The notes under the pieces: generated by a model | Databases searched by the model: none | Seen by the model: the letters and a program-made list of their open reading frames with translations, nothing else | Told to the model about the DNA's origin: nothing | Made by a program: the position numbers and the translations under genes | IMG/VR virus record: IMGVR_UViG_3300038424_000251 | Location: 248,001 to 312,000 of that record | Length of the DNA: 64,000 bases | Reading direction: 5' to 3' (one strand) | Part shown: positions 7,967 to 46,150 of the stretch, one piece after another | How positions within the stretch are numbered: the first letter of the stretch is position 1 | How the letters are laid out: each line of letters starts with the position of its first letter

Positions 7967-8704
7967 ATGAAAGTATCACCATCCGCAAAATTTTACAAAT
8001 ATTATCAGGTTATGTCACTAAAAAATGATGCAGATAAAGCTTTTTTTGATGATTTTGATGATGATTATAAAGATTTGTCCGTATCTCGTCCTTCAAGTTG
8101 GCCTTACCGTAGTTTGATTTCACAGTCAGTAGCAAAAGCAGCAAAGGATGAAGCAGCAGTTGTCGGGGCAACTCAACCACAACCAAAGGTTCAAAAACCG
8201 AATGTAATTCCTATAATGTTTGATGTAATCATTGGAAGTCCCAAACAAAACAATAACAACAATAAAAATTTTGTTGTCAATTCTTCTGATAAACTCCTTT
8301 ATTTGTCATTTAACCGTTATGTGATTCAAACAGCAATTAAGACATTTAATGATAATATTAAAAAGTATTATAACCAAACACTTCCCCGATTCATTATTAA
8401 GAGTGGTTGTGTTTCTTTGAATACCGGAAAAGATATTGAATTGTTATTTTATGGTTTAATATTTGATGATATTAAAATAACCGCTTCATTTATCTATTAC
8501 GATGATGCCTATGATGAATTTAATACTATAGAAAGTCTTAACATTTTGAATGAAATCAACCGAACTTGTGAATTTTTCATCTTGGGTGAATATGAATTGG
8601 ATGAAACAGAAGAGCACATAACCGACATGAAAATCGAATCTTTTGGTTATGTCAACCGAATTAGGAATATAAGGGAACAATTATATAAACAAAATGAATG
8701 GTAA
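7967..8704 (+). CDS. hypothetical protein (paralog 2)
   Basis: FFILGEYELDE..HITDMKIESFGYVN. Confidence 0.8.
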   Translation: MKVSPSAKFYKYYQVMSLKNDADKAFFDDFDDDYKDLSVSRPSSWPYRSLISQSVAKAAKDEAAVVGATQPQPKVQKPNVIPIMFDVIIGSPKQNNNNNKNFVVNSSDKLLYLSFNRYVIQTAIKTFNDNIKKYYNQTLPRFIIKSGCVSLNTGKDIELLFYGLIFDDIKITASFIYYDDAYDEFNTIESLNILNEINRTCEFFILGEYELDETEEHITDMKIESFGYVNRIRNIREQLYKQNEW

Positions 8705-9218
8705 ATTTTTAACCACTATAACCGAAGTCCGGATTGGTAACAATGGACAACCGAACTTTTACATAACCGGAAAAAATGAAGCAATCGTAAAGCAAGCTTT
8801 AAAAGAGTTTACCGACAAAATGTTTGACACGCCTTGTGTTCATTATTATGTAAAAATTGACCAAACGGATTGTATCTTGGATTCTGTGGAATTGGCAGGA
8901 TGTGTAATATGGGCAAGTCTGCGATATTATACCATTGAAAAAGACAGTGAGGATGACAAATCTCTTGAAGAATCATTATTTGAAGAATCTTTGAGGCGTG
9001 GTGCATTGTTTTTAGGATGTGAATATGAATTTGACAGTGGAGAATATGTCAGTCCTCAATATTTGGGATTACCCAATGAGGATATGGAACGCATGTGTAT
9101 AAGCGATCAGTTAAATTTCATAAAATTCCATATGTTGTATTATTACAGTTATCCCACTTCACTTAATATTTCTGGTTATAGAAAAACAATTTATAGGATT
9201 CCTGAATTCAAGAGTTAA
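8694..9218 (+). CDS. hypothetical protein (possible paralog 3)
   Basis: overlapping start; ASLRYY and FLGCEYEFD segments echo gene 7967. Confidence 0.75.
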   Translation: MNGKFLTTITEVRIGNNGQPNFYITGKNEAIVKQALKEFTDKMFDTPCVHYYVKIDQTDCILDSVELAGCVIWASLRYYTIEKDSEDDKSLEESLFEESLRRGALFLGCEYEFDSGEYVSPQYLGLPNEDMERMCISDQLNFIKFHMLYYYSYPTSLNISGYRKTIYRIPEFKS

Positions 9219-9231
9219 ACTATTTTAATAT

Positions 9232-10068
9232 TTACCTTCTTTTTCCTGCTCTTCTTTCATTACAAATTTGGCAAAGGACTGATATTCTATTATTGTAACG
9301 TTTGATTACATACAAGCCATATGTCATACACTTTGGACATTTACCTGCAAGAATCGCTTTACTTCTTTTTGGTTCGTATCTTGTTTCAATGCAATGCTTG
9401 CAAATGAGAGATTTCATTTTATTTGGATATTCATATGCATCATTTTCATCATGAATACATTTACCTCGATTTATATGGTCTTTTCTAATCAATGAGTTTT
9501 TTATTCTATCTTTTATTCGAGTGGTCATTCTTGCTTGAATTGTGCTCATTTGTTTGACTTTATTAAGACTTTTTGCAAAATCTTCTCTGGATATTTCATC
9601 AATAGATTCCATTTTATCCCAATCAATAATATTTTTTGCTGGAATGGATCCAAAATAAATCAATGAATCTTTTACCCTTGAGTCAACTTTGAATTTTTTT
9701 GGGTCTAATCCTTGTGTGCTTATAGTAATGACAATTACATCTTCCCTGCCACCTATACCAAATGGCATAGCTCTCTTACTTTTTCCACTCTTATCTTCGG
9801 GAGGATAATTTCCAGAGGCACCAAAATACTTTGCTGTGGATGGATTTGTTGTAAGATATATACCTTTTTGTGCCCAAGCATAATTTTTATTATGCATTGG
9901 GTCCAACCCATACTTCCAAGCTCGATTAGCTCTACTTTCAATGGTGCCATGATACATTTTTAGTGGTATTCTTGTTGGAGTGGCAGTTTCCTTAATTATG
10001 TGAGATTGACCTATTGCTTTAGCAATTATATACTCTTTAATTAACTTTTTTACTTTAACCGCATTCAT
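9232..10068 (-). CDS. ADP-ribosyltransferase-fold (Tpt1/KptA-like) protein with C-terminal Zn ribbons
   Basis: MYHGT..KYGL..GIYLTT..A..G..VITI..IPAKNI; CKHC, CPKC, CQIC; N-terminal KKLIKE. Confidence 0.65.
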   Translation of the reverse strand: MNAVKVKKLIKEYIIAKAIGQSHIIKETATPTRIPLKMYHGTIESRANRAWKYGLDPMHNKNYAWAQKGIYLTTNPSTAKYFGASGNYPPEDKSGKSKRAMPFGIGGREDVIVITISTQGLDPKKFKVDSRVKDSLIYFGSIPAKNIIDWDKMESIDEISREDFAKSLNKVKQMSTIQARMTTRIKDRIKNSLIRKDHINRGKCIHDENDAYEYPNKMKSLICKHCIETRYEPKRSKAILAGKCPKCMTYGLYVIKRYNNRISVLCQICNERRAGKRR

Positions 10069-12387: not shown

Positions 12388-12791
12388 GGGCGTGTAATGG
12401 TATCGATTTATCATAACAGTCATACAGAGCATGTAGAGGATTGGTCATCTGTGGCCTCTTAAAAAACGAAGACTAAACTAAATGCTAATCTAAATCGATT
12501 GGTAAATGCTGACTTTGCTTTTGAGGTTAATACCTTTGAGGAAGTCGCTGTAGCGGCCTAGTTTCCGCTCCGTCATGTTGAGTGATTCTCACTAATTCAA
12601 TAATGGCGTAAAACCGTGAGAAAACTGCTTGTGGTTAAAATTACAGGACTGGTTAGATTGGGCAGTTCTCAATCTAGGTTTGATAATTTTCTCAAATTTT
12701 GATATTAAACCGAAGTTTAAAGTTGATAAACATGTAGTGCTGGATGGGTGTAATGGTAAAAACACGGGTTCAATTCCCGTCACGTCCACCA
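12388..12791 (+). ncRNA. ssrA: tmRNA
   Basis: GGGCGTG/CACGTCC-A-CCA acceptor with G3:U70, T-arm acggg-ttcaatt-cccgt, tag ORF 12484-12561 ANLNRLVNADFAFEVNTFEEVAVAA; promoter TTGACA ~12344. Confidence 0.93.
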
Positions 12792-18813: not shown

Positions 18814-18888
18814 GCTTCATTAGTTCAATGGCAAGAACAGGCGCCCCTAAACCGCCTTATAAGGGTTCAAGTCCCTTATGAAGCGCCA
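18814..18888 (+). tRNA. tRNA-like with CUA anticodon (amber suppressor-like)
   Basis: GCTTCAT/ATGAAGC-G-CCA; loop ccCTAaa; C31:C39 mismatch. Confidence 0.65.
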
Positions 18889-18892
18889 TTTT

Positions 18893-18962
18893 GGTCAAGT
18901 AATTTAAAAGCAGAACATCCTTTACGGGAAAGTAGTGCGTTCAAACCCACTCTTGACCACCA
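18893..18962 (+). ncRNA. degenerate tRNA-like RNA, shrunken anticodon arm
   Basis: GGTCAAG/CTTGACC-A-CCA, ttcaaac T loop. Confidence 0.6.
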
Positions 18963-18963
18963 C

Positions 18964-19018
18964 GGGCGGGATGGCGGTTTTGCCGTCTCACAACGTTCAA
19001 GTCGTTGCCCGCCCGCCA
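18964..19018 (+). ncRNA. 55-nt mini-tRNA (acceptor + one hairpin + T arm)
   Basis: GGGCGGG/CCCGCCC-G-CCA; caacg-ttcaagt-cgttg. Confidence 0.7.
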
Positions 19019-19156: not shown

Positions 19157-19160
19157 ATTT

Positions 19161-19243
19161 AAGATACACACAGCAATAAAAAATTGTCTAGTTGTAGGAA
19201 ACAACATAAAAAGGTCCCTCAGAAAAGAGTAAATCGGTATCTT
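19161..19243 (+). ncRNA. CAGCAA-stem RNA copy 1
   Basis: aagatac..acagcaa...gtatctt. Confidence 0.7.
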
Positions 19244-19248
19244 GAAAT

Positions 19249-19406: not shown

Positions 19407-20502
19407 TCACGATTGAATTCGGAACGCTTTCGAATGAAATCATAATGGTTTGTGTTCATACGGTACGAAACGCCGAAAGGTAGTAGTTGTTCAGTCAACC
19501 GTATCATGTGTGCCGATGTAATGACGGCGTAAGTAAACAACACTATAGTTGTTCACACTATGAATATTTGTTCTTTGTCAGTAGATTTAACGGGGAGTAT
19601 CGTCTCCGTTGGAGTTGCCGCAAGGTGACTTCATAAAGATAAACCGTAGCAATACGGCCAAAGGGATGGCCCCTAACGGCCACTCACCAATCGCAAGGTT
19701 GGACACCGATACAACGAGCGAAATCTGTAAATATCATCCAAAAGATGGTGTTACACTTAAAGCTGGGATGGAAAATGGTATCTGAGGGTAACACTGTAAG
19801 ATATCTACTAACGATGCCGTCGAGCACTACCATCTGCCAAGCGCAACAGTGAGAGTTAAGATTTAAGCAAAGTAGTGAGGTTTGAGGCCAGCAACCAAAA
19901 GCTTCACTACAATCTGATAGAAACCGGCCAAGGCTCATACTGAGGACGGAATCTTGAAAGATGAATGAGTATCCGCAAGAGAAAGTTAGGACTTGTGTGG
20001 CATTTTGTATCTCCAAAAGGTATGAATCCACAGGCACCGCACAAGTTTGTTAGGTTGATATAGCTCAAAGTAGAGCAACTGTATTCAGCACAGTAGGCTG
20101 CCGGAGTCAAATCTGGCTATCTATTAAAAAACGCAAAGCCGGTGCCCGCGATGACTGAAAAAGTCTTAATTCTGGAGCCGCAAGGTAATTCAGACAACCG
20201 TAGCTCGCAAGGTGAAAGTTGTTCGTGTTGAAGGTAACGGAGAGGTTAGCCCCTCTTACTGCCCGCAAGGCAGACGTTAAATGAGACGCGGAATAGGTTG
20301 TCGTCAGGTTGGAAATGCCACCAACTAAATCAGGCAGACTTACCGGATAAACCATACGTTGTCCCGCAACGGTGGATTTGGATGAAGAGGAAGACTATCC
20401 GCAAGGTAGTGATAATCTTAGAAGGCCGGTACACAATGAGGTATTCTCACTCAAAGTAAATCACAAAATTGTCGAGATAGACCTTCGGGGAACGTTTCGT
20501 GA
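19407..20502 (+). ncRNA. giant structured ncRNA, GOLLD-like
   Basis: ~1.1 kb, GC-richer, no + strand ORF, many GCAA/GAAA tetraloop hairpins, promoter 19375, end pairing tcacga/tcgtga, terminator after it, located among tRNAs; family name is from recall. Confidence 0.7.
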
Positions 20503-30114: not shown

Positions 30115-30579
30115 ATGAGCAATGAAGTATGGAAAGACATAAAGGGATATGATGGAACATTTCAAATTTCATCGTTGGGTAATGTCAAGCGTGTAAAATC
30201 GCCATCTGGAAAATATTTGGTTTGCAAATTATTGAAAGTTTGTAAACATAAAAATGGATATTCAGGAATATCATTGTGGAAAAATGGAGTTAGAACAAGA
30301 TGTAGGATTAATAGGTTAGTAGCAGAAACGTTTATCGAGAAATCGGATGATAACAAAAAAATAGTTCATCATAAAAATTATAATAGGTCTGATAATAGAG
30401 TAGAAAATTTAGAATGGGTTACACACCTTTATAATTTACAAAATAAAATGCCTAAATATGTCAAAAAGAAAAAGTTACTAATGGATTTATTAAAAATCTT
30501 GAATGAAATGGGGTTATTAAAAGAAAATATTGATGAAACAGAGATATTAAAAAAGATTGAAAGAAGTTGTCGGTTTTAG
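30115..30579 (+). CDS. NUMOD4-HNH homing endonuclease
   Basis: EVWKDIKGYDG.FQISSLGNVK; RLVAETF..VHHKN..RSDN...NLEWVT. Confidence 0.92.
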   Translation: MSNEVWKDIKGYDGTFQISSLGNVKRVKSPSGKYLVCKLLKVCKHKNGYSGISLWKNGVRTRCRINRLVAETFIEKSDDNKKIVHHKNYNRSDNRVENLEWVTHLYNLQNKMPKYVKKKKLLMDLLKILNEMGLLKENIDETEILKKIERSCRF

Positions 30580-31862: not shown

Positions 31863-32600
31863 ATGAAAAGAAAAATTAAAAATACAACGATGATATCAGG
31901 TATAGTTTTACTATTCTTGATAGGAATTTCTACATCATTTATTATTGGTAGTAGTAGAAGCCATAAAGTAATAATAAATCCATCATCAAATTCAACATAT
32001 ATTGTGGTTTCAAACAATGTAGTAATACCCTCAAATGTAGTACCTTCAACTAATGTAGTGATATGTTATTCAAATAATATTTTGAGTGATAGTGATATGA
32101 TTGAGATTATGGATACTGGAGCAATACCCAATTTTGACAGAGTGACCAATAATATTTACCGAGGAAGTCAACCAACCGAAGTAGGATGGCGATATTTACA
32201 TAATGTTCTTGGTGTGACTAACGTTGTAAAACTTAATACCGAAAAAGAAGGTTCTGATGAATATGCTATATCATTGGGAATGAAGGTTAATTATTTTCCA
32301 ATTTCATTTGAGGAACAAATGATGGGTCCATCAAGTCAAAAAATAAATTCTATTTTAGCATCAATTACGGATAAAACATTTATTCATTGTGGTAGTGATT
32401 TAAGAACAAAATCAGGAATAGATAAAACATTAGACCGTCAAGGGGGACAAGATAGGACTGGTTTGGTTGTTGCTGAATATCGTTATCTTGTGGATGGTTG
32501 GTCAAAGCAAGATGCAAGACAAGAAATGTTACAGCATGGATTTCACACAAGTCTTGTTGGACTTGATTGGTATTGGAGAGAAAAAACAATAAGACAATAA
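31863..32600 (+). CDS. exported Cys-based (PTP/DSP-like) phosphatase
   Basis: N-terminal TM; NF.RV..IYRGSQP; HC...GQDRTG. Confidence 0.85.
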   Translation: MKRKIKNTTMISGIVLLFLIGISTSFIIGSSRSHKVIINPSSNSTYIVVSNNVVIPSNVVPSTNVVICYSNNILSDSDMIEIMDTGAIPNFDRVTNNIYRGSQPTEVGWRYLHNVLGVTNVVKLNTEKEGSDEYAISLGMKVNYFPISFEEQMMGPSSQKINSILASITDKTFIHCGSDLRTKSGIDKTLDRQGGQDRTGLVVAEYRYLVDGWSKQDARQEMLQHGFHTSLVGLDWYWREKTIRQ

Positions 32601-32608
32601 AATAATTT

Positions 32609-32663
32609 GAGATACGAACAGCAACTAAAAAAATTCATATGCTAAATGAAAAATAAGTATCTC
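32609..32663 (+). ncRNA. CAGCAA-stem RNA copy 2 (minimal)
   Basis: gagatac-ga-acagcaa...gtatctc. Confidence 0.7.
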
Positions 32664-32774
32664 GTAATTTAAGCGCTAGTAGGAAAGTAAATACCTCTAT
32701 TGTAGGTATGTCTAGGAGATAACCTCTGCTCAGACCATCAGTAAAATGAATGGGCGGCTTTCTACAGTATTCGT

Positions 32775-32849
32775 GGTCGTATGTTGTAGTGGTAGCAGTG
32801 GTTGTTTGTCAAACAACGGGCAGGAGTTCGATTCTCCTTATGACCGCCA
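32775..32849 (+). tRNA. tRNA-Asp(GTC)
   Basis: gttgt-ttGTCaa-acaac; G73. Confidence 0.85.
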
Positions 32850-32857
32850 ATTTTAAC

Positions 32858-32932
32858 GGGGAGTTAGCCAAGAGGAAAGGCAGGAATCTGCAAAATTCTT
32901 ATTCGTTGGTTCGAGTCCAACACTTCCCTCCA
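32858..32932 (+). tRNA. tRNA-Cys(GCA)
   Basis: ggaat-ctGCAaa-attct; U73. Confidence 0.9.
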
Positions 32933-32940
32933 ATTTTTGT

Positions 32941-33030
32941 CAGAGTGTAGGAAGGTAACTTGGAAGCCACCCTCGCTTGGAACGAGGCGTCTTTATGACC
33001 CTGTGAGTTCGAATCTCACCACTCTGACCA
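32941..33030 (+). tRNA. tRNA-Pro(TGG) with long variable arm
   Basis: cctcg-ctTGGaa-cgagg; extra gtc-tttat-gac arm. Confidence 0.75.
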
Positions 33031-33036
33031 ATTTAT

Positions 33037-33119
33037 GCCAGAGTAATATATCTAGTTTCTTTCAGATATTTACAGCAAACCATTAGGAAATATTGGTTCA
33101 AATCCGATCTCTGGCGCCA
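33037..33119 (+). ncRNA. tRNA-fused, permuted CAGCAA-stem RNA (copy 3)
   Basis: GCCAGAG/CTCTGGC-G-CCA, T arm attgg-ttcaaat-ccgat, internal atatct..agatat-tt-acagcaa. Confidence 0.7.
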
Positions 33120-33121
33120 AT

Positions 33122-33418
33122 TTCTAGTTCCTTCTGTGGCGGAATGTATCGTAGATGTTACAACGCACGCTATCAGACGCCTTGGGCGGTCTTGTGACAC
33201 AGGAAGGGTAAAGCAAAGTCAGCGAGCCCCGGTTTCGGAAAGGTGGCGCACCGAGACAGACTCGTTTGAGGGCTGGCTACCAATCTATCCCTCATTATAG
33301 GTAAAATCCTATTGCGGTGTTGAGAGTAAGTAGCTCTTACTTGAGCCGTATGGCTGAAATAACCACAACACTTGTGAAGCAACTATACACTTGGTATGTG
33401 TATCAGTTGGGACTAGAA
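33122..33418 (+). ncRNA. orphan ~300-nt structured RNA
   Basis: 10-bp closing stem ttctagttcc/gggactagaa, GC-rich multi-hairpin interior. Confidence 0.65.
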
Positions 33419-33424
33419 AATTTT

Positions 33425-33525
33425 TAGATGCCCACAGCAACACCCAAAAGGTAAAATCAATGCACTATAAAGCAATGACAAGATGGTTCAAACCCATCAA
33501 AACGCCGAAAGGCGTCTGGCATCTA
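33425..33525 (+). ncRNA. CAGCAA-stem RNA copy 4 with T arm
   Basis: tagatgcc-c-acagcaa...gatgg-ttcaaac-ccatc...ggcatcta. Confidence 0.75.
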
Positions 33526-33530
33526 GCTTT

Positions 33531-33606
33531 CCCCGTTTAGCAAATCTGGTGATTGCCTTCGGCTGAAGACCGAATGAGCTCGGTTCGAATCCGGGTACGG
33601 GGACCA
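33531..33606 (+). tRNA. tRNA-Phe(GAA)
   Basis: ttcgg-ctGAAga-ccgaa. Confidence 0.85.
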
Positions 33607-33669
33607 TTTTAATAGTAGAGCGCTAAAATAAAATTAAGCGCTTTACTAATTTCATCATATTTATTTAAT

Positions 33670-34137
33670 ATGAGAGAAATTACTACAAACGAAGAATTGT
33701 CAGAAATAGTTAAAAATTCTATTTCTTGGAGTGACGTAATTAGAGCATGTGGTGCTCCTATAGGTGGGGCAGCATATCAACATTACCAATCAAGAGTAAA
33801 AAAGTTAAATTTTAATACAAGTCATTTTCTAGGAAAAGCAGCGCATGCAGGTCCAAGAGGAACTGGTAAGGCCAAAAGAAAACACTGGTCTGAAATTCTA
33901 ATTTTTAGAAAAACTAACGATAGAGAAAGGTCAAATAAATTCAGAAGAGCATATAAAGAATATTGTGAAGAAAAAAATATTCCTATACAATGTGTTGACT
34001 GTAAAAATGGTGGTGAATGGTATGGAAAGAAACTTAAACTTGAAATCAATCATAAAGATGATTGTAGATGGAATAATATTCCAGAAAATTTGGAATGGCT
34101 GTGCCCAAACTGTCATTCAATTAAAACAATTTATTAA
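33670..34137 (+). CDS. HNH endonuclease
   Basis: CVDC..W.GKKL.LEINHKD..NN..ENLEWLCPNCHS. Confidence 0.9.
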   Translation: MREITTNEELSEIVKNSISWSDVIRACGAPIGGAAYQHYQSRVKKLNFNTSHFLGKAAHAGPRGTGKAKRKHWSEILIFRKTNDRERSNKFRRAYKEYCEEKNIPIQCVDCKNGGEWYGKKLKLEINHKDDCRWNNIPENLEWLCPNCHSIKTIY

Positions 34138-39078: not shown

Positions 39079-39140
39079 AAGATACCAACAGCAATTCTAA
39101 TACAATCCGCTAATCAAGCAGACTAAAAAGATGGTATCTT
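39079..39140 (+). ncRNA. CAGCAA-stem RNA copy 5
   Basis: aagatacca-acagcaa...tggtatctt. Confidence 0.75.
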
Positions 39141-39144
39141 GTTT

Positions 39145-39251: not shown

Positions 39252-40121
39252 GTGATTAAATTAGTCAATATATTGAAAGAAATAGAAAGTAAAGAGCAAC
39301 TTAAAAAACTTGCATATTCTTGGCAAAAACCTGATGGAACTTTTATTCCTGTAAAACGCGAACATGGTTTGGATGCTTTAAAACATGTTGGTGGTGACCC
39401 GAAAGATGATAATGTTGTTATATTGTGGAAAAGAGGATGGCAAAGAATATTTTATTATGGTACTGACCTTAATGTTCATAATGAATTTTATCAACCAAAT
39501 GATAAACAGAAAGTTAGATTAATTGAATTAGCAATACAACTTGGTTTTGAGAAAGTGGAATGGGATGGTGGTGATAAAGGTGATAAAATTCTTTGGTCGG
39601 TTCATGATGTTTTGGAAGAATCTATTCAAAATTTATCCAGAACAAAGCGTTTAATTCCTTTAATAAAACTTGCCAGACAATATAATACATTTGAGAATTT
39701 TTATAACGATTATCAATTTAAAAATTATCATGGAATTTATTGGCATTTAACCAATAATCCAAATTTTCGAATAGACCCCAAGCATTCTCCATCAGACCTT
39801 TCTTCATTGGCTATTGGTGGTTCTGGAGAACCCGGATTAACGCTGAGTACAGATTTGGGCAATTGGTATTCTATTTTTAAGAAATCCAGAAAATATGCTG
39901 CTCAAATAGATTTATCAGATTTAAAACCGAATGTGGATTATAGGGATACTACACGGCAATTCGGTCACGAAATATATGTTTTTAAACCAGAAAAAGTAAG
40001 AGTGGTAAAAGTATATCCTATAAAGAATGCCATGGCCATAAATTTAAGAGACTACAAAAAAGTTTTACCACAATCTATAGATGAATTAAAAAAGTTGTAT
40101 TATTTAGCTAAACAGGGATAG
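39252..40121 (+). CDS. two-domain hypothetical protein, possible ART-like C-terminal domain
   Basis: GTG start IKLVNILKE after TATTTAT; YWHLT..GLTLS..HEIYVF. Confidence 0.65.
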   Translation: MIKLVNILKEIESKEQLKKLAYSWQKPDGTFIPVKREHGLDALKHVGGDPKDDNVVILWKRGWQRIFYYGTDLNVHNEFYQPNDKQKVRLIELAIQLGFEKVEWDGGDKGDKILWSVHDVLEESIQNLSRTKRLIPLIKLARQYNTFENFYNDYQFKNYHGIYWHLTNNPNFRIDPKHSPSDLSSLAIGGSGEPGLTLSTDLGNWYSIFKKSRKYAAQIDLSDLKPNVDYRDTTRQFGHEIYVFKPEKVRVVKVYPIKNAMAINLRDYKKVLPQSIDELKKLYYLAKQG

Positions 40122-40310
40122 ACATTCCTTGGTTATGTTGGTGTAATCCGGTAGCACGCCCGTTTAGGGAGGTTACGTTCAAATCGTAAGTGTTATGATG
40201 AGCTCTTGCTCGAATGGAATCGGCTCGACGGAGCATTAGTGAAATCCCCTGATAGAAATAGAGAGATAGACGAAAATCCGAAGATGGAGGTTCAATTCCT
40301 CCCTGCCCCT
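40114..40310 (+). ncRNA. composite RNA with two T arms
   Basis: D-arm-like ggtgtaatccggtagcac; ttacg-ttcaaat-cgtaa and ggagg-ttcaatt-cctcc. Confidence 0.5.
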
Positions 40311-40417
40311 CTGGGGCGGTGGTGCAAATGGTTAGCATGTTGGACGCCCGGAACGACTGTGAAATCCTCTTTAATTTCTTAATTGACATAAATGCTTTAA
40401 TGGTGTATAATATCAAT

Positions 40418-45933: not shown

Positions 45934-45937
45934 GTTT

Positions 45938-46092
45938 TAGATGTGGTAACAGCAATTAAATATTGTTAAAACAAAAAACCCCAAAAGGGAATAAATCCTG
46001 CGAAACAGGTCGTAGCGGTGGCTACGCTAAAAACGCTCAACAGGGGTAAGTTGTAAAAAGAGCTTCGGAGATAACCGTAAATTCCGCATCTA
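45938..46092 (+). ncRNA. CAGCAA-stem RNA copy 7 (largest)
   Basis: tagatgtgg-ta-acagcaa...ccgcatcta; several internal hairpins. Confidence 0.75.
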
Positions 46093-46150
46093 GTATATTC
46101 TTTCTCTTCGTGAGAAAGATGAAGTTTTCCTCTCGGAAGGGAAACTTTAT

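Follow-up and report, generated by a model that had tools for sequence, protein, structure and literature searches.

The region analysed here, hereafter the window, is a stretch of 64,000 nucleotides covering bases 248001-312000 of the 365,299-bp IMG/VR virus record IMGVR_UViG_3300038424_000251, which CheckV rates complete. The phage carries a T4-type baseplate wedge protein, by which its nearest cultured relatives are a Microcystis phage (43% identity) and Flavobacterium phages (36.5%), and the sequencing runs that hold the region are peat and wetland metagenomes. The window contains a very large tRNA array on the + strand, with 43 tRNAs called by ARAGORN and 42 by Rfam, together with a tmRNA and a GOLLD RNA, and interspersed with free-standing HNH endonuclease genes and a tyrosine-phosphatase-family ORF. 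One of the ARAGORN calls is an amber-suppressor-type tRNA, but reading TAG through hardly lengthens the ORFs (111 versus 114 ORFs of 300 aa or more), and reading TGA through also adds almost no long ORFs, indicating that the standard genetic code fits and giving no sign of genome-wide recoding. Within this array, between a tRNA-like gene (E1) and a stem-closed spacer element (E2), lies a 300-base non-coding RNA of no known family (Table 1).

Table 1. Coordinates of the RNA, its predicted structural elements and other features (window coordinates unless stated otherwise)
Feature	Position	Strand	Description	Basis
Orphan RNA	33121-33420	+	300 templated nt, followed in RNA data by a non-templated CC	metatranscriptome contig; no Rfam match; GC 47.3%
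P1, 5' strand	33121-33131	+	UUUCUAGUUCC; the 5' end of the RNA is its first paired base	pair probability 0.93; contig junction
P1, 3' strand and A33420	33409-33420	+	GGGACUAGAAA (33409-33419) plus unpaired A33420 in the position of a tRNA discriminator base	folding; contig junction
5' hairpin domain	33133-33177	+	apical loop carries UAGAU (33152-33156)	helix probabilities 0.71-0.94
Two small hairpins	33178-33204	+	CGCC-UUG-GGCG and UCUUGU-GAC-ACAGGA	folding
GC-rich core	33205-33266	+	local hairpins CCGG-UUU-CGG, GGUG-GCG-CACC and CGAG-ACAGA-CUCG; long-range pairing unresolved	pair probabilities of about 0.25 or less for the predicted pairings; 4 substitutions in the variant
Central hairpin	33267-33294	+	UGAGGG/CCCUCA (33267-33272 / 33289-33294) with the 16-nt loop CUGGCUACCAAUCUAU, complementary to the loops at 33152-33156 (5 bp) and 33391-33396 (6 bp)	folding; loop shuffles; invariant in the variant
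AUAGG hairpin	33297-33312	+	AUAGG-UAAAAU-CCUAU	folding; outer pair A33297-U33312 becomes G-C in the variant
Two hairpins	33321-33355	+	UGAGAGU..GCUCUUA and AGCC-GUAU-GGCU	folding
3' hairpin	33381-33408	+	aact-atacac..gtgtat-c-agtt; 10 bp with a bulged C, 7-nt loop UUGGUAU; abuts P1 directly and can stack on it as a T arm does on an acceptor stem; loop not a canonical T-loop	probabilities 0.82-0.98
3' trailer	33421-33425	+	UUUUU directly after the discriminator-like A; no encoded CCA; the last two U (33424-33425) also begin the 5' stem strand of E2	sequence
E1 (upstream)	33037-33119	+	tRNA-like gene with a 7-bp acceptor stem, T arm (AUUGG-UUCAAAU-CCGAU) and encoded GCCA end, no anticodon arm; degenerate CAGCAA motif	not called by ARAGORN or Rfam tRNA; weak match to the tRNA-like Streptococcus sRNA SpF41 (E 1.8)
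E2 (downstream)	33424-33526	+	regular CAGCAA element, 9-bp closing stem UUAGAUGCC/GGCAUCUAG, span 103 nt	motif and stem comparison
tRNA-Phe(GAA)	33531-33606	+	next gene in the array	Rfam, ARAGORN
Other CAGCAA elements	19160-19246, 32608-32664, 39079-39142, 45937-46093	+	stem-closed modules	motif and stem comparison
tmRNA	12388-12791	+	25-residue tag ending AVAA, encoded CCA	Rfam, ARAGORN
GOLLD RNA	19988-20453	+	165.5 bits; the 440 nt upstream (19540-19979) is also GC-rich (up to 51%) and unannotated, and may be the variable 5' domain of the same RNA	Rfam
tRNA, anticodon CUA	18814-18888	+	labelled Pyl	ARAGORN
GC-rich stretches (45-52%)	18884-19012 and 40100-40389		look like unconventional or decayed tRNA-like genes; 18884-18952 and 18953-19009 each have terminal pairing followed by CCA and T-arm-like GTTCAA motifs; 40100-40389 holds two GTTCAA motifs	sequence
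HNH endonuclease genes	30115-30579 and 33670-34137		one with NUMOD4; the gene at 33670 follows tRNA-Phe directly	
Tyrosine-phosphatase-family ORF	31863-32600			
CCA-adding-type nucleotidyltransferase	about 7991-9478 of the phage record, outside the window	-	495 aa, class II; PolyA_pol head, RNA-binding and HD domains	best NCBIfam match CCA tRNA nucleotidyltransferase, 4e-64
RNA-ligase-family ORFs (PF09414)	126528-127007; 189025-189528; 212753-213343 of the phage record, outside the window	-; +; +	three proteins	Pfam

The original prediction described an orphan structured RNA of an unrecognised family at 33122-33418, GC-rich, closed by a 10-bp helix and lacking a credible ORF. To assess this, we first re-examined the sequence. 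The named hairpins are present, the closing helix P1 in fact comprises 11 bp including one G.U, and the proper limits are 33121-33420. GC content is 47.3%, compared with 31.6% in both flanking ORFs, 33.9% in the window and 48-57% in the neighbouring tRNAs, and the only ORFs are 44-69 aa with no Pfam match at E<=1. In a scan of 4227 Rfam 15 families, nothing falls within the RNA on either strand at gathering score or at E<=10, while the same scans recover 42 tRNAs, the tmRNA and GOLLD. However, the sequence alone is not beyond chance: an 11-bp helix with at most one G.U at a span of 150-500 nt is not rare, with 110 in the window against 69-108 in shuffles, and folding z-scores are modest and similar on both strands (-2.2 on + and -2.7 on -). 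What lifts the element above chance is that RNA-seq contig ends fall exactly at the base of P1.

To determine whether the element is present as RNA, we aligned contigs of two RNA runs and two DNA runs to 32700-33700. The results show that it is present in two metatranscriptomes while the flanks are not. In a wetland metatranscriptome, one 227-nt contig without any mismatch reads 33276-33420, then two letters CC that are not in the DNA, then 33121-33200, a joint that goes back 300 with 80 nt on its shorter side. This run has no contig on the flanking tRNAs, spacers or HNH gene within the 1001 bases examined, and the two DNA runs are collinear across 33121 and across 33420. An aquaculture metatranscriptome from an unrelated study holds a 166-nt contig over 33208-33359 with 12 differences (about 92% identity). 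Given that the end mapping rests on a single low-depth contig (mean word depth 2.4) from one run, and that contigs show neither strand nor abundance, we treat the ends and the CC tail as the finding, and the circle suggested by the joined ends as a tentative possibility.

Read against the predicted fold, the 5' end is the first paired base of P1, the last templated base is the single unpaired base after P1, and the untemplated CC follows it where the gene has a U-run. This layout is consistent with a tRNA acceptor end (position 1 paired with 72, discriminator 73, then C74 and C75), the kind produced by RNase P, by RNase Z acting on CCA-less precursors and by the CCA-adding enzyme, although the terminal A is not seen and CC is not what a finished CCA addition gives. 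The phage itself encodes a nucleotidyltransferase of the CCA-adding type, and all its ordinary tRNAs and its tmRNA encode their own CCA, so this RNA is the odd one out. The resemblance is not complete, in that P1 plus the stacked 3' hairpin is about 21 bp, not the 12 bp of a tRNA acceptor/T minihelix. We assigned the RNA to the + strand because all tRNAs, the tmRNA and GOLLD lie on it, the + fold is 11-12 kcal/mol better, the G.U pairs of P1 and the 5' hairpin would be A.C on the other strand, and only on + does the end geometry match a known processing pathway.

We next asked whether the remainder of the RNA shows signs of a specific fold. P1 and the hairpins are predicted with confidence, whereas the core (33205-33266) and 33356-33380 are not resolved. 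The 16-nt loop of the central hairpin contains UACCAAUCUA, the exact complement of UAGAU in the apical loop of the 5' domain plus UUGGUA in the loop of the 3' hairpin. Only 0.3% of shuffles of that loop do as well in a post hoc test, and we infer that the contact would pull both arm tips onto the central hairpin. The aquaculture variant supports the fold modestly. Positions 33256-33296, including the 16-nt loop, show no listed change, A33297>G and U33312>C turn an A-U pair into G-C, two further changes fall in that hairpin's loop, and of the four in the unresolved core one makes a G.U and one breaks a predicted pair. One variant with one compensatory pair cannot, however, give statistical covariation.

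Searches for homologues indicate that the RNA is an orphan. Blastn in distant mode against 50,697 phage records gave no match. Exact and degenerate pattern scans (a 17-mer, a 20-mer, a 16-mer and a variant-specific pattern in viral contigs, two scans of metagenome contigs and one of genome contigs) returned only identical copies of the same phage, or chance hits in coding or high-GC DNA, and anchoring on neighbouring proteins (the phosphatase-like ORF and a serine hydrolase) recovered only the same phage. We also searched 14 related viral records and about 160 kb of related tRNA arrays, found through the baseplate protein and the CAGCAA motif, by blastn, nhmmer with maximum sensitivity and a single-sequence covariance model, and found nothing, with the limit that three of the loci (L113, L116 and L124) could not be searched as whole records. 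Identical copies occur in three IMG/VR contigs and one JGI contig of the same phage, assembled from several separate peat and wetland samples. The closest relative with a syntenic array (baseplate 83% identical) has other sequence between its Asp and Phe tRNAs. The gene therefore looks like a recent gain of one lineage, and the 92% copy in an aquaculture sample shows that this lineage is not confined to peat.

The RNA had also been described as lying between two CAGCAA elements, but these are not a matched pair bracketing it. The heptamer ACAGCAA is enriched in the window (21 copies against 8.4 expected), and the extended motif TTTnAGATR(n2-5)ACAGCAA occurs only six times in the whole genome, all on + and all in the array. 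Five of the six, and 22 further distinct copies in 12 related IMG/VR contigs, are closed by a 7-10-bp stem (..AGATRYn / n'RYATCT..), with nACAGCAA(C)AAA on the 5' side of the loop; the stem starts 2-4 nt after a tRNA's CCA and spans 50-213 nt. The stem position after AGATAC is seen as A-U, C-G, G-C and U-A, an orthologous pair differs by a G-C to A-U double change, and U.G pairs occur on the + strand only. These elements, none of which matches Rfam, are thus a separate, conserved family of stem-closed spacer RNAs, or possibly processing signals or promoter-plus-leader units, of this phage group. E2 is a normal member, and a 151-nt peat-metagenome contig matches it over 33480-33533 with 8 differences in 54 nt before running on into related but diverged sequence, indicating a more distant relative of this part of the array in the same habitat. 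In contrast, the upstream copy at 33064 lies inside E1 and lacks the closing stem, and the 300-nt RNA itself has neither the stem nor the heptamer.

Based on these observations, we propose that the locus encodes a stable, non-coding RNA of about 302 nt, cut out of the tRNA-array transcript by the machinery that matures tRNAs, a reading to which we assign a probability of about 0.6. In this model, the cuts are inferred to be made by RNase P-type and RNase Z-type enzymes, the CC to be added by a CCA-adding nucleotidyltransferase of either the host or the phage, and the roughly 280-nt body to fold into about ten hairpins held compact by loop-loop contacts of the 16-nt loop. The function is pure inference: our working model is a structured scaffold or decoy within phage tRNA metabolism, in the way GOLLD and ROOL accompany phage tRNA islands. 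A covalently closed RNA would explain the joint most simply in a random-primed library, with P1 capped by an A-C-C triloop, and at least part of the pool may be closed in this way, possibly by one of the three PF09414 proteins, which by family use 3'-OH and 5'-P ends; closure would protect the RNA from exonucleases. No RtcB was found, and no T4 Rnl1 family member was detected, although that last search had no positive control. It remains possible, though tentative, that the phage makes a DNA-encoded circular RNA by a route not described before, through excision by tRNA-end processing, extension by two untemplated C's and end-to-end sealing by an RNA ligase.

The joint may instead be a library artefact, the RNA being linear in the cell and the junction arising by reverse-transcriptase template switching or in-vitro ligation. 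Only one contig shows it, the library selection is recorded only as "other", and ends held together by an 11-bp helix would be expected to ligate easily in vitro. However, template switching from a + strand 5' end would be expected to leave G's rather than C's in the sense strand, since MMLV-type enzymes mostly add C to the cDNA. Moreover, words seen only once are probably dropped when Logan contigs are built, in which case the junction words were seen at least twice and the junction would be no rarer than the body of the RNA. This possibility still implies the same ends and the same CC tail. A minus-strand transcript, whose cDNA was C-tailed by reverse transcriptase at the complement of 33420 before a jump to another molecule's 3' end, cannot be excluded but is very unlikely. 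The minus strand folds about as significantly (z -2.66) and C is the usual non-templated addition, yet, besides the arguments on strand given above, every gene within about 35 kb on either side is on +, a 1-nt 5' overhang matches no known processing, and the acceptor 3' end (...AGAAA) offers no GG to which a CC tail could anneal.

We consider it similarly improbable that the element is a mobile or self-processing RNA, such as a group I intron or a ribozyme-flanked cassette, recently inserted between duplicated tRNA-like sequence. Its absence from the syntenic position in the closest relative, the layout shared by the 3' part of E1 and by E2 (motif, T-arm-like hairpin, CUGGC), the nearby HNH genes and the circular junction would fit such a scenario, but no intron or ribozyme family matches at E<=10, the 3' end is A rather than the terminal G of group I introns, there is no split host gene (the upstream gene ends in its own CCA), and self-circularisation would not add a non-templated CC. 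It is also unlikely that the RNA is merely a GC-rich spacer made of decayed tRNA genes. The array does carry several degenerate tRNA-like sequences, similar helices occur by chance and there is no conservation beyond one lineage, whereas no tRNA remnant is detected inside the RNA at E<=10, its ends and tailing are precise, the variant shows a compensatory change and loop-restricted changes, the loop-loop complementarity is unlikely by chance, and the sequence is identical in copies from separate samples.

Other known classes were considered and rejected. ARAGORN makes no tRNA or tmRNA call within 33121-33420, the RNA has no GTTCRA T-loop, its third pair is U-A rather than G3.U70, and the only frame read by eye from the GCA at 33213 ends in ...RLV. 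No RNase P model matches at E<=10, and although GCAAAGUCAGCG (33213-33224) appears to fit the CR-I pattern, no CR-V and no P4 partner strand were found by eye. SRP and HEARO/omega-RNA likewise lack any model match and defining features. A viroid-like replicon is ruled out by the presence of the sequence in phage DNA in 22 DNA runs and four assembled contigs, and rolling translation of a circle by a UAG near the 5' end and by 302 not being a multiple of 3.

Bacterial Y RNAs (YrlA), tRNA mimics bound by Ro60, are also non-coding RNAs whose ends form a long stem, with tRNA-like features, and are sometimes phage-encoded (PMC4201824), but no Ro60/TROVE gene was found in the phage, there is no Rfam match, and the tRNA-like part here is the terminal stem rather than an internal T/D module. 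In ligase-made circular RNAs, such as tRNA-intron circles and the engineered Tornado system, the ends are brought together by a terminal helix and joined into a circle, which would explain the joint seen here; those probably rely on 5'-OH/2',3'-cyclic-phosphate ends and RtcB and add no nucleotides, whereas here the junction carries an untemplated CC. The species 1 and species 2 stable RNAs (rnaC, rnaD) of the phage T4 tRNA cluster appear comparable as small stable RNAs of unknown function, co-transcribed with phage tRNAs and released by tRNA-processing enzymes. With tmRNA and other CCA-tailed tRNA-like ends (viral tRNA-like structures, mascRNA), the RNA appears, on the evidence of one contig, to share ends that pair into an acceptor-like helix with one unpaired base followed by C-C, and a size in the tmRNA range; in mascRNA and some viral tRNA-like structures, CCA or its last base is likely added after transcription. 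It has, however, no T-loop and no tag reading frame ending in a hydrophobic tail.

Phage tRNA islands are already known to harbour large enigmatic RNAs, GOLLD and ROOL, which are non-coding, multi-hairpin and GC-enriched, with no known protein partner or function (bioRxiv 10.1101/2024.12.08.627333), and this phage carries a GOLLD 13 kb upstream. The RNA described here is about 300 nt instead of 580-800 or more, matches neither Rfam model and has no family of homologues, and GOLLD and ROOL do not appear to have acceptor-like ends or CC(A) tails. It would add a third, unrelated RNA to these islands, with defined ends that tie it to the tRNA maturation and CCA-repair machinery. If the end-joining is real, it would be a natural, protein-made circular RNA in a bacterial virus, formed through a tRNA-like end, and both the biology (stability, decoy or scaffold roles against tRNA-targeting defences) and the route to circular RNA would be new; if the joint is an artefact, the locus would still be a clean example of a non-tRNA substrate for tRNA-end processing and CC(A) tailing in an uncultured jumbo phage. 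Taken together, the RNA is a member of neither group but works most like two things at once, the ornate RNAs of phage tRNA islands and the RNAs with tRNA-like, CCA-tailed ends.
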